This document shows, piece by piece, positions 10,684-48,804 of a stretch of DNA of 64,000 nt. This DNA is from Octopus bimaculoides (Eukaryota): assembly GCF_001194135.2 (NCBI RefSeq), contig NC_068999.1:51718758-51782757 (forward strand), in the 5' to 3' direction. Both the position numbers and the translations under genes were made by a program. The first letter of the stretch is position 1. Every line of letters starts with the position of its first letter. The notes beneath the pieces were generated by a model that saw nothing but the letters and a program-made list of their open reading frames with translations, ran no database searches and was not told the origin of the DNA.

Positions 10684-10747
10684 ATGTCTGACTTGTCCAC
10701 GGAGCAACCGTTCAACGTTCTGTCTTGCCCACCAAAGGAACCGGAGG
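10684..10747 (+). CDS. Putative first coding exon of the NLR-like gene (MSDLSTEQPFNVLSCPPKEPE + G)
   Basis: ATG at 10684, 21 codons plus 1 nt, then donor GG|gtaagg. Phase 1 matches the 43231 acceptor, giving ...PKEPE-E-IQDV.... Total 64+205+2320 = 2589 nt = 862 aa + stop. It follows a GA-rich UTR-like tract. The link across a 32.5-kb intron is inferred only from phase compatibility. Confidence 0.45.
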
Positions 10748-23648: not shown

Positions 23649-24168
23649 ATTTCTCATGTCTGTAATCAATGTGTTTGTTTGTTAGGTTTTTGTCTTTCAT
23701 AGTTCACATAAAATATCTTGGCTTTTAAGCCAAAGTTATTATTCTGGAATTCAGTTCTTATGACAACCAAACATCTCTTTGTCTGTTATCATAATTAGCT
23801 TGTCAAACATATGGTCGAAATAACCTCTCTAACAATCTCAGCTGCTTATATTGAAATAATTTATTTTCTTTAGAGACAAGACCACATTCCTCTCTATGTA
23901 TCTCTATTATTATGAATCTATATTAAAAAAATGGAAAAGGATATAATCAAATTAACTTACTCTTTTGTAATTCACCCATACATACATTGTGTGTGTGTGT
24001 GTGTAGTAAGAAGCTTGCTTCCCAACCACATGGTTCTGGGTTCAGTCCCACCACACTTTGAGCATGTGTCTTCTACTGTAGTCTCAGGCCAACCAAAGCC
24101 TTGTGAGTGGATTTCATAGAGAAAAACTGAAAGAAGCCCATTGTATGTATATATATATATATATATAT

Positions 24169-24749
24169 NNNNNNNNNNNNNNNNNNNNNNNNNNNNNNNN
24201 NNNNNNNNNNNNNNNNNNNNNNNNNNNNNNNNNNNNNNNNNNNNNNNNNNNNNNNNNNNNNNNNNNNNNNNNNNNNNNNNNNNNNNNNNNNNNNNNNNNN
24301 NNNNNNNNNNNNNNNNNNNNNNNNNNNNNNNNNNNNNNNNNNNNNNNNNNNNNNNNNNNNNNNNNNNNNNNNNNNNNNNNNNNNNNNNNNNNNNNNNNNN
24401 NNNNNNNNNNNNNNNNNNNNNNNNNNNNNNNNNNNNNNNNNNNNNNNNNNNNNNNNNNNNNNNNNNNNNNNNNNNNNNNNNNNNNNNNNNNNNNNNNNNN
24501 NNNNNNNNNNNNNNNNNNNNNNNNNNNNNNNNNNNNNNNNNNNNNNNNNNNNNNNNNNNNNNNNNNNNNNNNNNNNNNNNNNNNNNNNNNNNNNNNNNNN
24601 NNNNNNNNNNNNNNNNNNNNNNNNNNNNNNNNNNNNNNNNNNNNNNNNNNNNNNNNNNNNNNNNNNNNNNNNNNNNNNNNNNNNNNNNNNNNNNNNNNNN
24701 NNNNNNNNNNNNNNNNNNNNNNNNNNNNNNNNNNNNNNNNNNNNNNNNN
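24169..24749. other. Assembly gap (581 N); 10-N gaps also at 455, 23593, 29096, 41319, 41953
   Basis: Runs of N. Confidence 1.
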
Positions 24750-27700
24750 CTCTTCCCATGGACTGCAAATTAAATTTGTATACACAAATTAAACCTGTGC
24801 TATGGAGGAATGTAGTGGCGGACAAAAAACAAGACAGGAAAACAAACGGAAAAGAAAACAAGACAGGATACAAACGGAAAAGGCTATACGGCCAGACGTG
24901 AAAAATTATGTGTATATGAACGCTGTGAGGCATGAACTTGAAAGTGGGGACGAAGTAAGTTCGCGTGTTTGCTTGGCGATAGCCAAGGAAGAAAAGGATT
25001 AGTGACCGGAAGCATGTGACCATGCAGTGGTAAGGGAGAGAGAGAGAGAGTGTGGTAGAGGGAGAAACAAAGGGAGGAAGTAGAAGAATAGGTGAACAAT
25101 GAGAGAAAGAGGAATATAGTAGTACAGAAGGAAGTACGAGGGGGGAAAGAGGGAGATATAGTAGTAACAGAAGGAAGAAAGAGAGATACGTAGTAGTAAC
25201 AGAGGAAGAACGAGAAGGGGAAAAGGTGATAGAGTAGCGTCAGGCTTCTTTCAGTTTCCGTCTACCAAATCCACTCACAAAGCTTTGGTCGGCCCAAGGC
25301 TATAGTAGAAGACACTTTCCCAAGGTGCCACGCAGTGGGACTTAACCCGGAACCATGTGGTTTGTAAGCAAGCTACTTAGCACACAAAATTGTTAAAATA
25401 TTTTGTGTATTGTAGAATTATAACCAATTTATTGCACATGAATTTTAATAACAAAATCTTATGGGCCCCCAAGGATCATGTGGACCCCAATTGAGAACTA
25501 CTGTATTAACCAGAAGTCTTTGAACTTTACAATAATGCTTTACAATATTCTTAAACTTCATGATTTATTGAGATTCTGAACATAACGAAGTAAGACAATA
25601 TGAAGGTGAAGCATAACACGACAACAACTGGAGGCATCTTATCTACTTTCATGCACACCACATGTGACTTCCTTGCAATACTTGTTAAGATATCAACAGA
25701 AACCACTTATTAGCAATAGCGAGCGACTTGGCATCCACTCAAGAAGTCACGATCAATTATAACTAAAACACCATGGTTTTGAATAAAATATCAATGGTCA
25801 AACTTGCTTTCCTTCTTCACAGCAAAGGAGAAGACTGCCATGACTAGAGATGGTTGTTAATAGGTTTAGAAAGTTCAAGTGACAGCGGAAGTATGCCAAA
25901 CTCTTTGCTATTTATTTGTTCTCTCAGCCATATTTCAAATAGCATGTGACATGATTGCTTTAATGTTTCCAGCTAAATAATTACTTATGGCCCATTACTA
26001 CTGAAATATTCTTGTTGTCTAATGTACTGAAAGCTAGGTTTAGCTCTTTCTAGACAGCTCATCCTCTGTTCTTGGGTGTAATGTATGTGTGCATATGTGT
26101 ATCTATAAGTGGATATGTATGCGTATGTTTGTACTCTAACCCTTTTGATACCAACTTGCCTGAAGATGCTCCCGGATCCATGATACAAACTCCCAGTCAC
26201 TGTTTCAAAGGGATCTAAATTGAATCCTTCTATCAAAATTTTATGTTCCAAACATCTGCTTAGTAATGAGAATTATTTAACAAAATTCTTCATACAGCTC
26301 TATATTGGGCAAGTGTCTTCTATTATAGCCTCGGGCCGACCAAAGCCTTGTGAGTGGATTTGGTAGACGGAAACTGAAAGAAGCCCGTCGTATATATGTA
26401 TATATATATGTGTATATGTGTGAGTGTGTGTCTGTGTTTGTCCCCCCAACATCGCTTGACAACCGATGCTGGTGTGTTTACGTCCCCGTAACTTAGCAGT
26501 TCGGCAAAAGAGACTGATAGAATAAGTACTAGGCTTCCAAAGAATAAGTCCTGAGAATAAGTCCTGAAACAAGTAAAAGAGTAAAAGAAGAGTATATGTT
26601 ACACATGGTGCAAACATTATCTTGATACAGAATTTAAATACTTGAAGTGGAAAACTGTTTATTATATCAAAATACGGCTTAAATTTCTCCTAGTGGATGG
26701 TCACAATTGTGGCTAGACTATTCAGCTGCAAGATGCAAATCTAGTAGACTGTCATTTTTATATATAATAAATGTCTGTGTTAGCATTTTAACACAATGAT
26801 TATTGTTGATGCAAGTGAAGTTGTTATAGACAGAAAAATAGATGGTTTATGGTCATAAAGGTTTGCTATCTCTCTCTCCTGGGTTATGTATATTGGCTCA
26901 AAGTAAACTGTTGTTGTGTATTCCCATTATTTGTTCAATAAAGCCTTTATTAATGACTGTAGGATGTGATTTGTGAGAGTTTTATCTACTATTTTACAGC
27001 AAGTTGATATCTATCATTTATCAGCAGTCTGTTGAAGAAAATTATTTGCCTTTGGACAATTCTCTCCCCTCCCTCAGTATTATACTTTCTGTTATATATC
27101 TTCAGAGTAGGTGGCTGAGGTAACAGGTTAGTAGGTTCATTACTTTAATGAGGTGATTGCGTTAAGAGTCAGTGTGAGTTTTAGCTTACTTAAGAGAAGT
27201 TTTATTTTTCATCTGTGTGTGTGTGTGTGTGTATATACACACACACCTTAAAATCATCATTCATTATTACATAGAAAGTTCGCTAAATATGGCCAGCCAC
27301 AGTTAGACAATTTTATAGTTTTTGCAAGGATGGGTTTCATGCCTCATATTTTTGCTATCATTATCTCTTCTAGATCAATAATATTTTAGAGAGCTTCTCA
27401 CTATCCTGAATTCCAATATTTCTATCTACACAATACTAACCTAAACTACAATACAGGTTGTATGATTTTGGTCTTTGATAATTTCTGATTAGTTTGATGG
27501 TGTCTCACTGTCTGAATATATACTTATATTAGAAAAAAATAGCTTTTGGTCTTTGGTGAATGATTGTCTGTTTTTATGATCTTTAATAATTAGGATAATT
27601 TATAAATATTTTCTTGTTTGCTATTATCTCCATTTTGCAGAACATTGTTACTCAATTGCTGTTGCTTGCTTTTTAACCCTTTATCATTTGAACTGGCCAT

Positions 27701-30123: not shown

Positions 30124-31339
30124 ACGTTACTTTGTCTCTCCCCACTCCTTTCTTATCTGTGTGTGTGTTTAAGGATGTGTATGTTTTATGTAAGAGTATA
30201 TATATATATATATCCTTGTGGTGTGCATTTATGATTGTGTGTGCATTGCATGCTCTAGTATGTAGTGTCTTTGTGTATGTATTTCCATTTGTGCTTGTGT
30301 ATGTAAGCTTTTTATGTATTCGTGTATGTATTTATAGGTGTATATATATATAATATGCATATGTGTGTGTGTACATGTTCATATACTTGCATATGTGTGC
30401 ATATATGCAAATGTGTCTATATCTGCATATGCTCAAATTCATATGCATATATGTGCATATATATGTGTGTGCATGTACATGTGTTCATATACCTGCTTAT
30501 GTGTGTATATATAAATGTGCATCTATATATCTGTACATGCGTGCAAATTTGTGTGTGTGTGTACATGCATGTAAGCAAAAATAATACAGAAGCCTGTTGT
30601 GTGTGCACACATTGGGTCCATGTCTAGATTTATGTTCCTTTTATGCCCAGTGACTTAGTGATTCAACTGAAAGATTGAAGTATGTACCAGTTTGAAATAT
30701 GTGCTAGAGTCAATATGATTGTCTAAAAACCCTTGAAGGTGATACTCCAGCATGGTCATAGTGCAGGGACCAAATCCAGTGTCTGAATGTGTATTGCATA
30801 CAAAAAAATGGTTTCATGCTTCTCATTGTATTGTCTTATTTACAAACATGCACACACATTCAATTGGTTGGCTGAGCACACACATGCAAACAAGTGTGTA
30901 TGCACATACACAGATGCACATACACCTATGCATACATACATTCACATATACACACATACATACACTGGTTTGATGTGGGGTGGGGATCTTTTGTTATTTA
31001 AACCCATTTTGGTCCTGATTGAGCAAACCTATTATGAAAGGCATTCAAACCATGACCATCCTGTCTTTTCTTCTTTCTTCATTCATACAAGTAGAGCATA
31101 AATAGGAATATATTATTCAATGTCCTCATTTTTAGTGTGTGATTTGACAGCGGGTTGGCTGCTGTTTCTAGCATGCCAAGTGACCACAAAATAGGTTTCC
31201 TCTCTGGCTTTTGGTATGTCTGTTGGTCGATGGTATTTGGACAAGTAGTATTTAGTGATGGCATTAGTACCTGAAAATCTTGTGACTGTCTGCTGCTGTG
31301 TACTTTTCAGATGACCCCAGACTGGTGAGGGAGTGGCTA

Positions 31340-31638
31340 AGGAGGGAGAATGAGTGAGAGTGAGGAATATAGAACAAATGAAGCCCGAGTAAGAGAGAGA
31401 GAAAGGAGGGGTGTGGTTTGGTGGGGGAGTGGGGGGAGACTGGGAAATAGAATGTGTGTGTGTTGTGAGTGAGGAGGAGGTTGATCTAGAGAGAGTAAAA
31501 AATTGAAGCTGGGTGATGGGGAGATGAAAATCAAATGCAGGGAAGAGATTGGGAAGGAAAGAGGAAAGAAAGACAAAAACAGAGATTGAAAGAAATGGAG
31601 AAGATTTGCTGGAATGTTTAAGAATGGAATGAAAGAAG

Positions 31639-31669
<31 letters not shown>

Positions 31670-31766
31670 GAGGTGAGAAAGAGAGGGTGAGAGAGAATGT
31701 AGATTGATTGACAGGGAGGGAGGGAGTGAGAGAGAAAGGAAAGATGGGAGAGCAGATTTGCAAAGA

Positions 31767-31801
<35 letters not shown>

Positions 31802-32248
31802 AAAAGAGAATGTAGTGTGTGAGAGAGGGAGAGAGAGAGAGAGAAGTAGACTGTGAAAATGAAGATGAGAGAGAATGTAGATTGACCAGAGAGTGAGGGA
31901 GTGAGAGAAGTAGACTGAGAAAGACAGGTAAGAATGAATGTGGATTGACATGGGGAGGGGGGGGAGAAAATGAGTTACAAAGAAGAGATGTGAGAGCAGA
32001 TTTGCGAAGAATGAATGAGAAGAGAGAGAGAGAGAGAGATAAAGAAGAAAAGAGAGAGAGAGAGAAAGAAGAAAAGAGAGAGCGTATTTGCAAAGAATGA
32101 ATGAGAAGAGAGAGAGAGAGAGAGATAAAGAAGAAAAGAGAGAGAGAGAGAAAGAAGAAAAGAGAGAGCGTATTTGCAAAGAATGAATGAAAGAGAATGT
32201 AGGTTGCCAAAGAGTGTCAGAAAGAGAAAGAGAGAGATTGGTAGATTG

Positions 32249-32312
<64 letters not shown>

Positions 32313-32470
32313 AATGGATTTTAAAAGAATGAAGGAAGTAGGAAGTGATGTTGATTGACAAAAAGCCTGAATGATAAAGAGACAAAAGAGAAGTTGGTTG
32401 ACTTAGGAGAGAGAGGGGGGGGGAAGAAAGAGATGTTTGTGGGTGGGGGAAGTGGAAGAGAGAGAGAACT
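31340..32470. repeat. GA-rich compound microsatellite with ~75-bp higher-order repeats
   Basis: (GA)n tracts; TTTGCAAAGAATGAATGAGAAGAGAG...AGAGAGCGTA repeated about 3 times at 32000-32190. Confidence 0.9.
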
Positions 32471-39879: not shown

Positions 39880-40585
39880 TTTTACCCAATGTGCTGGATA
39901 TGCAGTGTACAGTGTACATGGTTTTATAGCATAGGATATATCAATATCTAATGTGCTGTATATGCTATGTATAGCATGATTCTGTATGTAATCTTGTAGC
40001 ATATAACACATCCAATGTATTGGATACACAATGTACAGCAAAATTCTGTACTTGGCCTCAGAGCATGGAATATCTCTAATGTACAGGCTACATTATATAC
40101 AGCATGATTCCATATTTGACCTTGTAGCATGGAATATATCATGTGTTGGGTATATTAGATGGTGTGATTCCATACTTGGCCTTGTAGCATAGAATATATC
40201 CAATGTATTGGATACGCAATGTACAGTGTGATTCTGTACTTGGGCTTATAGCATGGAATCTATCTAATGTACAGGATATCTTACATCCAACACGATTCCA
40301 TATTTGACCTTGTAGCATGGAATATATCATGTGCTGGATATATTATGTGGTGTGGTTCCATATTTGACCTTGTAACATGCAATATATCATGTGCTGGATA
40401 TATTATGTGGTGTGGTTCCATATTTGACATTGTAACATGGAATATATCATGTGCTGGATATATTATGTGGTGTGGTTCCATATTTGACCTTGTAGCATGG
40501 AATATATCCAATGTGCTTAAGAGGCTATATACAACATAATTCCATATTTGGCCTTGTAGCATAGAATATATCAAATATGCTGGAG
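39880..40585. repeat. 60-bp minisatellite, about 11-12 units
   Basis: Three near-identical units CATGTGCTGGATATATTATGTGGTGTGGTTCCATATTTGACCTTGTAGCATGGAATATAT at 40328-40507, with more diverged units on both sides. Confidence 0.92.
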
Positions 40586-43230: not shown

Positions 43231-43435
43231 AAATTCAAGACGTTATCATTGATCACCTGAAGCAGTTCTATGGAGAAACTGCAAGTATTGGATTCAGTTC
43301 ACCGTGGGGAAAATTTCCAGAACTTCGGACACAGGACCTCAACCTCTGCCTGTATCGGGTCCTGGACTTCCGAAACAGGAATGATATACCAGACATCACT
43401 TCTATGTACCATGACAGTAATCAGCCCCCTTATAG
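43231..43435 (+). CDS. NLR-like gene, penultimate exon (pre-NACHT region)
   Basis: tttcttttgcag|AA ... TATAG|gtaag; 205 nt, phase 1 in and phase 2 out. Open frame (E)IQDVIIDHLKQFYGETASIGFSSPWGKFPELRTQDLNLCLYRVLDFRNRNDIPDITSMYHDSNQPPY(R) joins in frame to CHEVSIYDLF. The Lxx(F/Y)Y...PW pattern resembles segments preceding animal NACHT domains. Confidence 0.8.
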
Positions 43436-44400: not shown

Positions 44401-46484
44401 ATTTATGATTAGTTTTTTTTTTTTTTAGTCTTCTTTGAAGATTATTGGTATTTTAAATCTCAGTGCACTCATTTTCAAACTGCCTCACCCTGAAGTTTTT
44501 TGTTTTTATTGATACATTCTTTTACTTTCAAAAATAGTTTTCTACATCTAGACTCAGGTATGGCTGTGTGGTTAAGAAGCTTGCTTTGTAATGATGTAGC
44601 TTCAGGTTCAGTCCTACTGCACAGCACCTTGAGCAAGTGTCTTCTACTGTAGCCCTTCACTGACCAATGCCTTGTGAGGGAATTTGGTAGACATGTCGAA
44701 GCCCATTGTGTGTGTATCTTTGTGTCAGTTTGTTTTTATCCCTGTAACTTAGTGGTTCAGCCAAAGAGACCAATGGAATAAGCATCAAACTTGACAAAAT
44801 AAGTCCTAGAGTCAATTTGACTGAACTTTAACCCATTACCTCCCATAATTCTATTAACTGGAATTTTTTTATGAAACTTTGATTTCTAGCATAAAACAGC
44901 CTTAGAAACATGCTGGAATGATCAAAATAACATTTCAAAATAACATTTTAAATAGAAATAAGCAAGATATTGGGTGAAAAATTAGCAAACCTCATTTGAA
45001 TATCAGAGAAATATACCTAGTAGATGTAGCAAAAAGGTTAGATATGTGTAAATATTGACAGATAATTACGAAATTTGTAATTTTTAAGTGATCTATGTCA
45101 GAGGTCTTGCAATGAACTTTCAAGAATGCTTGTTTCAAATCCTGAAATCATTGGAATCTAAAAATGCTCGTTTCAAATCCTGGAAATATAAGGAATCCAA
45201 GAAGCTCTTTATGAACTTTCAAAAATGCTTGTTTCCTATCCTGCGATGAAGCAGAAACTTTTCTGTCCCAAATACAAGATTACAACTTCTTAGTGATGAT
45301 GAATGTTTGGTTATGATATTTTAGGCAGAGTGGATGTTGTAAGCAAAACTAAGTAGATTGCCTTTGTGGAACTGTTCACCAAAATTCTATTATGGAATAC
45401 AGTCACTAATTAATTAAATCAATATTCTGCAAATGGATATGAAAGAGTACTAGCATTAGCAAAGGTATTGGCTACAGAATTAGATCTTTTTATCTGGACT
45501 GCAACCAAGCTGGAGCACTGCCTTAACCCATGTTGTGTGCCATGCAGTGGGACTGAACCCAGAACCATGAGGTTGGGAAGCAAGCTTCTTACCACAAAGC
45601 CACTCCTGCGCCTAATAAATATTGTTTTAATTCACCAAACAAAACCGTCTCCTAGAAAGGTGAAAGGATTGTTGACAAATTTTCACCCACCTGTCAGATA
45701 CTTGCAATGAGTGGATGACAATGAAGCAATAGTTAGTGATGTACCACCCTGGTGTCTGATTACACTTAGGCAGAACAAGACAATCAAAAACATGCTTTAT
45801 ATCCTGTATGCCAGTTTACTTGACCAAAATAAAAATAACTATACAGTTGAACTGAAAGAAGATAGTTGAAATACAACACTCCAATAAGATACTATAAGCT
45901 ATGAAACTAAAAGTCAGATAATTTTACAGTGTTCAGTCGAAAAATTTTCTCAGTTGAGTTAACTAGTTTCTTTCATCTGTAGTTATAATGCAGCTAAATT
46001 GCTTTCTTTATTGTTTTCATTTTTTTTTTAATGATTAAAAAGTTTTTCTTTTCTTAACTACATGTTTGTCACTTTAAGCAAGTGTGTTCTGCTATAGCAC
46101 TGGGCCAATAAAAACCTTGTGAGTGGATTTGGGAGATGGAAACTGAAAGAAACCCATAGTATATGTGTATGTACATACATTTGTGTGTGTGTGTCCTCTT
46201 GTCTTGACAGTGTGTGATAGTTGTAAACGAGCATCACTGTTATACAAGCATTGTTCATTTTCAATCTATTCTGTGAAAACATGTCTGACCATGGGTAGAT
46301 ATTATCTTGCTTGAAGGTTGGCAACAGGAAGGGAATGTGACCTTATAAAATCTGCCTCAATAAACTCCATTTGACCCATGCAAGCATAGAAAAATGGGCA
46401 TTAAAACAATGAAGATGATTTACTTTATTCTCTCTGTCTACAACTTAAGATGTTTTAATGTTATTCTACTTTTTTCTGTTTTAG

Positions 46485-48804
46485 GTGTCATGAAGTGTCC
46501 ATTTATGACCTCTTCTCACCAGTTCAACACAATCTCACACAAATCACCTTAGTCGAGAGTGATGTCCATGAGCAACGATTGCTCTGCTGGAAGTTATTAT
46601 ACGACTGGTCCACAAAGACAATGGTGTCGTCTCCTTTCTATGTGAACAAGTTCACCATCATTATTTATGTAGACTGTCTCCAAGTATCAACATTGTCGGA
46701 TATAAAACCTTCAGAGGCAAGAGAGAGGTTGGTTTCATTAGTGAATATTTTGTTCAATCCGTTGATCCAAGAGAAGAAATGCAGCTGCAAGGATATCTGC
46801 GATTGGCTGGTTTCCATCCAAAACGATGTACTTGTTATTCTTGATAACTTTGATTATGTAAATGATTCCGGTAAAGAAGACCTCCGTGGTATTCTCAGTT
46901 CTCTGTGTTTACCTGAGGCACAGCTGCTAATATCTTGCCGTCCAAGATTCGCCAATCGACAACTCTGTGATCAAATGTTTCTTAATGTTGGACTCCAGTT
47001 TCATTGTAGTTTTGTGTTCCTTCAAGAAATGCTGCTGTCAGACTTCTCTGCATTGGAGGTGTCACTTTTGATTCAGAAGGTTCGGAAAGATTTGGTGCTT
47101 ACTAGAATTCTCCGGAATGTCTATACACTAGTTCTGCTAGCATGGCTTATTATAGACAACCATGCTAAACCAAAGACTAATAGTATTTATCATTTGTACA
47201 GAGAACTTACGCAATGTGCCCTTAGTCGGTACTATACCAAATTTCAAATTCTTCCCGAAAGACATTTAATATCTGTAGTTTTGAAGAAATTGTCCACACT
47301 GTCTGTAAAAATGTGGAAATCAGAGAGGTCATTCTGTAGCCCTAAAGAAATAGATTCCCATTTCTGGCAGCTCCCCAATACTCATCTTGGTTTCTTTGTT
47401 GAGGCCAAACTTCTTCCTTTGCAAAATTCCACATCATATTACATGTTTCCTAGCACAAACTTTTTAGAATATTTTGTGTCTGTTTACATTGCTGAACATA
47501 CAGACAGGTATGAGAGAGATAATCTTTTAGAGTGGGTATTAAGTCGAGAAATGGGTTTCCTCTGGGTAGTGTTAACTGGTTCCCTTATGTCTTGTTATGA
47601 TGAGGATGCAGTTCGCTGTTTACTAGATGTCATGGCAAATATGAGTCGGAAGAAATGTGTTGGCATCGGAATCTTTGATAAAATCACAAGGGGCAATGTG
47701 CATGACTATGACTTGTGTTTAGAGTGCCTTAGTCAGATCTATTTCCCTTCTTCTCTTATGAATTGTGTTGTGGAACATTTTCCAGATGTTTTAGAGTTCC
47801 ACATTCAGAGATGCCCACCTCAAGTTCTTGAAAATTTCTGTCGACTTGCAAGGCTCTGTCGATTAAGGATCCGTGGCATCACTCTTCATTTAGATGGCAT
47901 GGAGGATCAATATTTCTTGTGTATATCCCTGGCACACGCTATAAACCGACTAGAAAATTTGACCACACTACTTATACACTGTGAAAGTGTGTTCAACAGT
48001 CAGTACATTGTCGATATTGTATGCGAAATATTTAAAAAGAATAAATATATACGAACTTTGTCCTTTTGTGGGGAAATGAACAGGGCTGGCAATTTCACAC
48101 CAATAATGTACAAAAAGGTACGATCAGTTTTCACAAGTGACATAGCTTTGCGCATGCTCTGTATAGACAACATTCATAATCGCCATCGTTTAGCATACAT
48201 TCTTAATGTGTTTCCTCACATTTTCGAGAAAATTGAACTAGCAAGATGCGACTTGGAAAGTGCTACTGAGAATCTTGTAGGTAAAATCAAGTTCTCAAAG
48301 AACTTCTCCAGTTTTTCGGTCAGCAACTGTGTTATCAGCGTCACTTCTGTGAATCGTATTTTAGAAGAGCTGCTGAACTGTGAAGGCCTACGCAAGTTGA
48401 ACCTTAGTCTACTGTCACCACTGCGTAACTTCAGCTGCATTGATATCCGTTCCGGTGCATTTAAAGTTGCAGTTGATGACAGCGCATGTGAAAAAATCAA
48501 ACAGATGATTCTCAACCTCCCTCAACTAACGGAACTCATCCTTTGTCAAAACCGAATCGGAGACAAGCAGGTGCAGCTCATCCTGCAAGCCATAATCGAT
48601 ACCGGTCGCTTAGAACATCTAGACTTGAGTGGTAATGTTATAGGGGATGCCAGTGGCAGCCTCTTACAGAAGATGATGACTGAGTGTAGCAGTTTGAATG
48701 TGTTGTGGCTCTGTTCAAATGACTTCTCTGAGTCAATGAGAAAGCAGTTGCTTCAGACTTCTATAGGATTGGACCAGTTAAAGTTAATTGTTGAAAGAAC
48801 TTGA
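46485..48804 (+). CDS. NLR-like protein (degenerate NACHT + HD2 + RI-like LRRs), large terminal exon
   Basis: Contains the 769-aa stop-free ORF 46495-48804. Acceptor tttttctgttttag|G at 46484/46485 is phase 2 and matches the upstream exon. NACHT landmarks in the correct order: Walker-A position ITLVESDVHEQRLLCWKLLYDW (degenerate), Walker B VLVILDNFD, sensor-1 LLISCRP, IYHLYREL, KLSTLSVKMW, winged-helix region YMFPSTNFLEYF. C-terminal LRRs LTELILCQNRIGD, LEHLDLSGNVIGD, LNVLWLCSNDFS. Confidence 0.88.

Follow-up and report, generated by a model that had tools for sequence, protein, structure and literature searches.

An NLR-fold gene of octopuses and cuttlefish that has lost its nucleotide-contact motifs

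Models of NLR proteins rest on a switch between an ADP- and an ATP-bound state, and a coleoid protein of this type without a P-loop is a departure from them. Is such a gene still functional and, if so, what could its product do without the switch? This question is raised by a locus of Octopus bimaculoides, which we analyzed within a window of 64,000 nucleotides (NC_068999.1, positions 51,718,758 to 51,782,757 of the forward strand; all coordinates given below are positions in this window unless a contig is named). It harbors LOC106878221, a gene that is already annotated but carries no name and encodes an "uncharacterized protein" of 862 amino acids (XP_014783220.1). Literature searches on the gene and protein accessions revealed no mention of it. 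An earlier interpretation based on the letters of the DNA (hereafter called the sequence-only reading) had described a 2.3-kb frame at this site as an NLR with a dead NTPase that is maintained by selection. We find that LOC106878221 is a real, intact and strongly constrained gene with an NLR fold, and that its nucleotide-contact motifs were lost in the ancestor of octopuses and cuttlefish. Judged from this loss and from the near-constancy of the protein ever since, it in all likelihood functions without a nucleotide switch of the usual kind.

Nucleotide-contact motifs and fold

By using hhalign, we compared a profile built from the coleoid proteins only with one derived from canonical NACHT-LRR proteins, a set that includes coral-named relatives. 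The two profiles match over 353 columns (probability 98.85%, E=4e-17). At the position of the Walker A motif or P-loop, the octopus protein carries L112-R121 (LVESDVHEQR; 46549-46578, plus strand), followed by LLCWKLLYDW, and the aligned columns read ITLVESDVHE-QRLLCWKLLYDW in octopus and VVLIEGQPGMGKTTYCQKLAYDW in the canonical profile. The motif GxxGxGKT is thus replaced by SDV-HEQR: all glycines are gone, the Lys position is occupied by Q120 and the Thr position by R121. The same gap, corresponding to a deletion of one residue from the loop, was obtained by hhalign and in a MAFFT alignment that included the family members in which G(D/E)xGxGKT is preserved, in agreement with the earlier claim that no Gly or GK[T/S] is left and that the loop is one residue short.

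The remaining motifs are affected to a different extent. A Walker B remnant is present at L206-Y214 (LVILDNFDY; 46831-46857, plus strand; hhalign columns VLVILDNFDYVND in octopus and TLLVLDGLDELRD in the canonical profile). Compared with the pattern hhhhD[GAS]hDE, it reads VILD210-N-F-D213-Y, so that two acidic residues are kept while the third acidic position is a Tyr; Argonauta alone carries an Asn at position 210 (VILNNFDY; contig L001). The sensor-1 strand L237-P243 (LLISCRP; 46924-46944, plus strand) retains R242, which aligns with the Arg of the canonical ..TARH.. (columns LLISCRPR and IMLTARHE). Both elements had been called recognizable from the sequence, and the alignment of D210, D213 and R242 bears this out. 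In helical domain 1 (HD1), the canonical N-P-L is replaced by N301-V302-Y303 (47116-47124, plus strand; columns RNVYTLVLL and TNPLNTALL), which is invariant in coleoids. The proline exchanged here for Val, a loss that the sequence-only reading had not listed, stabilizes adenine in NLRs (PMC7583971). Finally, the winged-helix motif FxHxxxQEF is replaced by F411-F420 (FPSTNFLEYF; 47446-47475, plus strand; columns YYMFPSTNFLEYF in octopus and CYAFTHKTFQEYF in the canonical profile), with S413 at the position of the His, as the string FPSTNFLE had indicated.

Does the protein still belong to the STAND/NACHT class? The Pfam NACHT model (PF05729) scores 30.0 bits with exon 3 and 29.7 bits with the full protein, above its gathering cut-off of 26.7; the Sepia orthologue, with 26.6 bits, lies marginally under it. 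The match is confined to positions 43-143 of the 167 in the profile; it sets in behind the P-loop and extends beyond sensor 1, and thus leaves the P-loop part outside. A phmmer search with the NACHT half against the PDB sequences gave no match even at E<=10; by sequence, only the LRR end matches, with ribonuclease inhibitor at E=1.8e-6 and other LRR proteins more weakly.

We generated an AlphaFold2 model from an alignment of 14 sequences (mean predicted local distance difference test score, pLDDT, 76.5; predicted template-modeling score 0.63), in which the C-terminal horseshoe mostly exceeds a pLDDT of 90. In a Foldseek search of the PDB, all of the top 50 matches are animal NLRs (E 1e-19 to 1e-14, probability 1.00, full-length alignments), including NLRP14, NLRP3, NLRC4, NOD2, NLRP2/5/7/9, NAIP and NLRP1, with template-modeling scores up to 0.50-0.51. 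In the octopus model, a loop of two residues connects strand 109-114 (QITLVE) to helix 117-133. For comparison, we modeled the Haliotis relative, in which GDIGVGKT is intact, at similar alignment depth; this control shows a loop of four residues between strand 92-96 and a helix starting at residue 101, so that at the level of the models the P-loop appears shortened in octopus.

By the model, its structural matches and the profile alignment, LOC106878221 encodes an NLR consisting of a module of nucleotide-binding domain (NBD), HD1, winged-helix domain (WHD) and HD2, followed by an LRR horseshoe. The latter, an alpha/beta horseshoe of about residues 480-862 (47653-48801, plus strand), is predicted as alternating strands and helices and is of the ribonuclease-inhibitor type at its far end; the Pfam LRR models stay below their cut-offs with the octopus protein, and NCBIfam returned only a spurious sub-threshold LRR match. 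No N-terminal effector domain (CARD, PYD, BIR, death or TIR) and no integrated or extra domain was found by Pfam in the full-length protein. Residues 1-90 form one helix and a low-confidence linker in the model and correspond, in the alignments, to the usual pre-NACHT segment found in canonical NLRs. The architecture is therefore "NLRX-like", that is, a NACHT-LRR without an effector domain.

One explanation of these findings is that the NACHT module is still a switch, with a non-canonical site that accepts a nucleotide or some other ligand carrying phosphate. Walker B residues D210 and D213 and the sensor-1 Arg R242 are kept in most species, the segment replacing the loop is highly conserved (80-92% identical), indicating that the site is still functionally important, and ATP use persists in human NLRs that lack the winged-helix His (PMC7583971). 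However, all P-loop glycines and the Lys-Thr pair are gone from a loop that is also shorter, the adenine-contacting Pro is a Val, and Argonauta has exchanged a Walker B Asp for Asn. As read directly from the sequence, the new loop is moreover rich in acidic residues and would be expected to repel phosphates. On balance, we regard residual ligand-dependent switching as very unlikely.

Conservation and expression in coleoids

The frame described previously is not the entire gene but the last of three coding exons. We located the first two by tblastn with the Octopus vulgaris protein (P0001) and verified the splice dinucleotides; all borders follow the GT/AG rule. Coding exon 1 (10684-10747, plus strand) extends from Met1 to the first base of codon 22 and is directly followed by the donor GTAAGG. 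Coding exon 2 (43231-43435, plus strand), flanked by an AG acceptor and a GTAAGT donor, encodes residues 22-90 with the pre-NACHT segment ...SPWGKFPELRTQDLNLCLYRVLDFRNRNDI.... Coding exon 3 (46485-48804, plus strand) starts with the third base of codon 90, ends with the stop codon and harbors the entire NACHT module and the LRR horseshoe. The joined coding sequence of 2589 nucleotides translates into a protein identical to the annotated one (P0018 = XP_014783220.1).

Upstream of exon 3, a polypyrimidine tract and an AG are located at 46470-46484, where the DNA reads ...ttttttctgttttag/GTGTCATGAAG (the slash marks the exon border here and below), which identifies the 2.3-kb frame as an exon. 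The claim that it is uninterrupted stands: the stop-free stretch on the plus strand comprises 781 codons (46459-48804; listed as an open reading frame of 769 amino acids, 46495-48804). About 9e-19 frames of such length would be expected by chance at the base composition of the window, in which the next longest frame has 388 codons. A P-loop hidden in an upstream exon can be ruled out, as exon 3 begins 23 residues before the loop and its border is common to the relatives.

The search for close relatives was a word-indexed protein search, which is shallow for this molluscan NLR family, and yielded three clusters at 90% identity plus, even with a mixed family profile, four weak NACHT matches. The first cluster contains Octopus vulgaris, O. 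sinensis and O. bimaculoides, which are 99% identical among themselves, the second Argonauta hians with 86-88% identity, and the third 13 sequences with 77-79% identity, including the protein of Sepia esculenta (P0004). The degenerate loop is common to seven species sources, namely the three Octopus species, Argonauta hians, Sepia esculenta and two Sepia-like decapodiforms (spB and spC), and the frame is intact in all of them. Every coleoid sequence shows TLVES(D/N)(V/I)(H/Y)EQRL(L/F)C(W/S)KLLYDWS at the Walker A position, NVY in HD1 and MFP(S/T)(T/S)NFLEYF in the winged helix. A sequencing error as the source of the motif loss is ruled out by this agreement between seven independent species sources.

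A Sepia-like genome contig (L016), which encodes a 94%-identical orthologue, carries the same degenerate loop in decapodiform genomic DNA. Here, exon 2 ends with ..PPYR/GTGAGA, and exon 3 starts about 1 kb further at ttctag/ATGTCATGAAG; the end of exon 2 (..PPYR/GT) is common to octopus, Argonauta and this contig. Expression can be deduced from the same comparison. Contigs of ~3 kb assembled from 94 sequencing runs carry the Sepia esculenta sequence as an uninterrupted coding sequence of 860 amino acids, and since the genome contig demonstrates that decapodiforms have introns in this gene, these intron-free contigs represent spliced mRNA. The three of the 94 runs that we traced to a source are all derived from Sepia esculenta larvae (SRR19578111, SRR23936169 and SRR25097168, declared as larval RNA-seq; PMC10141105, PMC10571815).

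To describe selection on the gene, we used Nei-Gojobori estimates of non-synonymous (dN) and synonymous (dS) divergence and their ratio (omega). Between O. bimaculoides and O. vulgaris, a pair included to obtain an estimate undisturbed by saturation, 123 synonymous but only 6 non-synonymous differences were counted (Fisher p=4e-79), corresponding to a dS of 0.265, a dN of 0.0030 and an omega of 0.011. In this pair, the codons for L112, S115 and H118 of the former P-loop show synonymous changes only. Sepia esculenta and spB differ with a dS of 0.93, a dN of 0.052 and an omega of 0.056. For O. bimaculoides and Argonauta (dS ~2.8, dN 0.086, omega ~0.03, calculated as 0.031), synonymous sites are nearly saturated, and for Octopus and Sepia (dN 0.153) they are fully saturated and omega is not estimable, so that these comparisons are informative for dN and for an upper limit of omega only. 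Separated by domains, the sole unsaturated comparison (Sepia esculenta and spB) gave an omega of 0.03 for the LRR region. All these ratios are far below 1.

Constraint is distributed along the protein. The identity between Octopus and Sepia is 80% in the segment comprising the strand, the former P-loop and the following helix, compared with 66% in the rest of the NBD, 86% in HD1, 79% in the WHD, 86% in HD2, and 85% and 68% in the two parts of the LRR region. The whole length of the protein, including the sequence that replaced the P-loop, is thus under very strong purifying selection, and the conservation of the charged stretch in place of the loop points to a new structural role for the former pocket.

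Could the gene nevertheless be a non-functional relic, that is, a pseudogene, an annotation artefact or the product of a sequencing error? The only points in favor are its degenerate catalytic motifs and the lack of an Octopus transcript among the sequences of the searched collections. Against this stand the chance expectation for the 781-codon frame, the low omega values, the identical exon structure in Octopus, Argonauta and the Sepia-like genome, the spliced mRNA, and the recovery of the same sequence from independent assemblies. We regard this possibility as refuted and its remaining probability as negligible. The intact frames, the omega range of 0.011-0.056 and the spliced Sepia mRNA rule out a recent pseudogene. 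The proposal of a selected pseudo-ATPase NLR instead of a decaying copy withstood every refuting test named along with it and is supported, with the qualification that "dead NTPase" is a probable property read from its motifs.

In a neighbor-joining tree, the coleoids as well as the groups (Octopus, Argonauta) and (Sepia, spB) each received 100% bootstrap support. This grouping, together with the presence of the degenerate loop in both orders, indicates that the P-loop was lost before Octopodiformes and Decapodiformes separated. This split dates back about 250-300 million years.

Distant relatives and possible function

An exhaustive profile search resulted in 1649 matches, mostly through the LRR end, among which only a handful are full-length relatives, with 22-29% identity. 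Four of these are gastropod proteins of 851-882 amino acids, all "uncharacterized": Haliotis XP_071085098.1 (P0021), Babylonia XP_076435888.1 (P0022), Patella XP_050417790.1 (P0026) and Littorina XP_070213285.1 (P0222). They align over their full length (E 1e-46 to 1e-69; 22-25% identity to the octopus protein). Further relatives bearing GKT are P0020 (ERZ25071447), P0023 (SRR29346471, contig L014) and the more distant P0030. All full-length distant relatives keep G(D/E)xGxGKT, and the gastropod proteins, P0023 and P0030 also keep N/S-P-L in HD1. An intact GxxGxGKT is therefore restricted to distant relatives, whereas every coleoid orthologue is degenerate. P0023 combines an intact GDVGIGKT with the CKKLLYDW also seen in the coleoid gene, and has, on its contig, an exon border identical to that of octopus exon 3 (..ttacag/ATGCATTGAAG = R/CIEV..). 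It is about 25% identical to all other members, its position in the tree was not resolved, and a shallow word-indexed search of 5.8 billion clusters returned no close relative besides itself.

The gastropod members resemble the octopus protein in length and in the succession of pre-NACHT segment, NACHT and LRR horseshoe without an effector domain; their winged-helix His is replaced, their Walker B starts with D-N, and their horseshoe, like that of the coleoid protein, ends with ..LKLSL or ..LKLIV. Unlike the latter protein, they keep the P-loop together with the HD1 Pro; missing from them are the sensor-1 Arg (TGP, STP or TKP, with a two-residue gap in hhalign) and the extended Walker B acids (DNVT, DNLD or DNMC). 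The Pfam NACHT model covers only about its first 30 positions with these proteins and stays below threshold. The coleoids show the opposite combination, with Walker A and HD1 Pro lost and the sensor-1 Arg and a Walker B of DNFD retained, while in P0030 Walker A, HD1 Pro, sensor-1 Arg, Walker B and winged-helix His are all canonical. As far as can be judged from these motifs, the family seems to have lost its ATPase motifs in a mosaic fashion, different ones in each lineage, while length and architecture were kept. If this is true, the ancestral job of the protein would never have depended on an ATPase cycle.

The sequence-only reading had listed the losses of the P-loop and of the winged-helix His side by side. 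Both are indeed missing, but the losses are uncoupled: the His is absent alongside an intact GKT in gastropods and is absent also in P0023, so that its loss is a family trait predating that of the P-loop. The identity to Haliotis is 11-21% in NBD, HD1 and WHD and 29-34% in the LRR region, the part best conserved with gastropods; identity between octopus and gastropods is lowest in HD1 and WHD. The pattern is that of a single burst of change in the NACHT module, preceding the radiation of coleoids, and of stasis thereafter. We tentatively suggest, at somewhat less than even odds, a more specific scenario in which the NACHT module was remodeled once on the coleoid stem (11-21% identity to gastropods) and then frozen (66-99%), yielding a conserved, non-immune, constitutive NLR scaffold.

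What, then, does the protein do? Some NLRs without a functional P-loop are the sensor or decoy half of a pair. By analogy to RRS1/RPS4 and RGA5/RGA4 of plants, the LRR region of the octopus protein would detect a pathogen signal and activate a helper NLR with an intact P-loop. In plants, NLRs whose P-loop is degenerate or dispensable tend to be non-canonical or to have a partner (PMC3782705), helpers could come from the 5-20 NACHT genes typical of molluscs (PMC9646362), and the kept sensor-1 Arg could, as we infer, contact the nucleotide of a neighbor in a hetero-oligomer. But no second NACHT-coding sequence is present elsewhere in the window, where the downstream neighbor is CMS1-like, no integrated decoy or effector domain was found, and the protein searches returned no close paralogue. 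Moreover, an LRR omega of 0.03 and 77-79% identity between octopus and cuttlefish are the opposite of a diversifying, pathogen-facing pattern. A paired sensor or decoy is therefore unlikely in our view.

The very low omega, particularly of the LRR region, together with the lack of an effector or integrated domain and of a linked partner, argues for a scaffold or regulator and against a sensor or decoy engaged in an arms race. Of the roles proposed earlier (sensor, scaffold, decoy or dominant-negative regulator), scaffold and regulator thus fit better, and sensor and decoy are disfavored. We consider it probable that LOC106878221 encodes a single, effector-less and P-loop-less NACHT-LRR protein of a small molluscan family that has been kept as a constitutive scaffold or regulator. 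In the lineage leading to coleoids, the P-loop was lost, with the one-residue deletion, together with the HD1 proline, in a family in which the winged-helix His was already missing. According to our proposal, the NACHT module would no longer bind or hydrolyze ATP, so that there would be no ADP/ATP switch, and it would serve as a structural platform fixed in a single conformation. An unchanging endogenous partner would be bound by the LRR horseshoe, which is conserved, and the protein would act as a constitutive scaffold or regulator and not as a ligand-triggered, oligomerizing sensor. As a speculation, E114, D116, E119 and R121 may pair with R242, D210 and D213 and thereby fill the empty pocket.

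Several points weigh against this proposal. The role as scaffold or regulator is deduced from the selection pattern and the architecture, the confidence of the AlphaFold2 model is moderate in the NBD (pLDDT 50-84), and absence of the canonical motifs would, strictly, be compatible with an unusual mode of nucleotide binding, for which the kept sensor-1 Arg and, in most species, Walker B Asp could form a residual ligand site. Orthology with the gastropod proteins is likely rather than certain, as it is based on length, architecture and the exon border of P0023. Orthologues from squid and bobtail squid were not found in the protein collections, and a "coleoid-wide" loss is extrapolated from Octopoda and the Sepia group. 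In the collections searched, the Octopus cluster consists of genome-derived models only; the missing Octopus transcripts may reflect low or stage-restricted expression or uneven coverage of the collections. Expression, which the earlier reading had suggested to check, is demonstrated by spliced mRNA in Sepia esculenta, whereas in Octopus it rests on the selection evidence.

NLRs that deviate from the canonical motifs are known from other organisms. In plants, Pb1, RRS1, RGA5 and the ADR1 family resemble the octopus protein as STAND/NLR proteins with an absent or dispensable P-loop and non-canonical roles, rice Pb1 being completely devoid of a P-loop (PMC3782705). They differ in having an NB-ARC instead of a NACHT domain and an independent origin in plants, several of them occur in linked pairs or with integrated decoys, neither of which is seen for the octopus gene, and Pb1 is recent and lineage-specific, while the octopus gene is conserved across coleoid orders. 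Among human NLRs, NLRP6, NLRP8, NLRX1, CIITA and NAIP lack the winged-helix His and NLRC4, NLRP4, NLRP9 and NLRP13 the sensor-1 Arg, indicating that individual motifs are dispensable in working NLRs; the recent review in question, however, treats nucleotide binding as the route to the active state for all NLRs and names no human NLR without Walker A (PMC7583971). These human proteins share the fold of the octopus protein and are among its top structural matches or belong to their family, but in the octopus protein Walker A itself is gone.

A functional parallel may be found in the mammalian reproductive NLRPs (NLRP2, 5, 7, 14 and 4f), several of the best structural matches being of this kind (9ln6, 9xrl, 9l4j, 9l4l and 12dl). 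As members of the subcortical maternal complex and the cytoplasmic lattices, these are structural or scaffold components rather than pathogen sensors. In contrast to the octopus protein they bear a PYD, and there is no sequence relationship beyond the family. Outside the NLRs, the clamp-loader subunits delta and delta', LAP1 and LULL1 with torsins, and AAA5/6 of dynein are degenerate P-loop ATPase subunits with structural or regulatory roles. They resemble the octopus case in that an ATPase fold remained under selection after nucleotide binding was lost, but they are AAA+ and not STAND/NACHT proteins, and their ATPase-competent partners are known. To our knowledge, no animal NLR has been described that has naturally dispensed with nucleotide binding and yet remained nearly unchanged since before the divergence of octopuses and cuttlefish. 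Literature searches on pseudo-ATPase or nucleotide-independent NLRs gave nothing useful, and no description of this molluscan family was found.

The family provides a natural experiment, with the P-loop present in gastropods and absent in coleoids and both forms maintained by selection. Its comparison could show which functions of the NLR fold work without the switch, how an empty pocket is stabilized and how prevalent scaffold-type NLRs are in animals. For cephalopod biology, it adds a highly constrained and lineage-remodeled gene with no assigned role.

Genomic surroundings

Downstream of LOC106878221, at least four short conserved coding blocks are located on the minus strand between 53860 and 58945 (~53.86-54.05, 55.39-55.50, 56.22-56.30 and 58.88-58.95 kb). 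They are collinear with the gene adjoining the Argonauta orthologue, the product of which matches Pfam CMS1 (PF14617). The tail-to-tail arrangement with a CMS1-like neighbor is thus conserved between Octopus and Argonauta, which supports the orthology of the two genes. The other long open reading frames of the window are located in low-complexity or repeat DNA and have no Pfam match, and an Rfam scan of the window found nothing.

Intron 1 contains several repetitive regions. A tandem array of a 60-bp unit in about nine copies with 77-78% matches is located at 39993-40576, nested in a higher-order period of 188 bp (2.1 copies, 85%). Between 28000 and 36000, the GC skew is strongly positive (0.19-0.34) and the DNA is GA-rich and of low complexity; this region includes an 86-bp tandem repeat (31979-32196) and long overlapping minus-strand open reading frames (31113-32385) without a Pfam match. 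The lowest G+C content of the window (0.28) is found at 24000-26000, where open reading frames of 210-316 amino acids overlap on both strands (24073-25023); the minus-strand frame was scanned, showed no Pfam match and resembles low-complexity DNA rather than a gene. On the Sepia-like contig L016, a small minus-strand open reading frame (contig positions 20388-20657) about 8 kb downstream of the orthologue matches Pfam HTH_48, a transposase-type helix-turn-helix.

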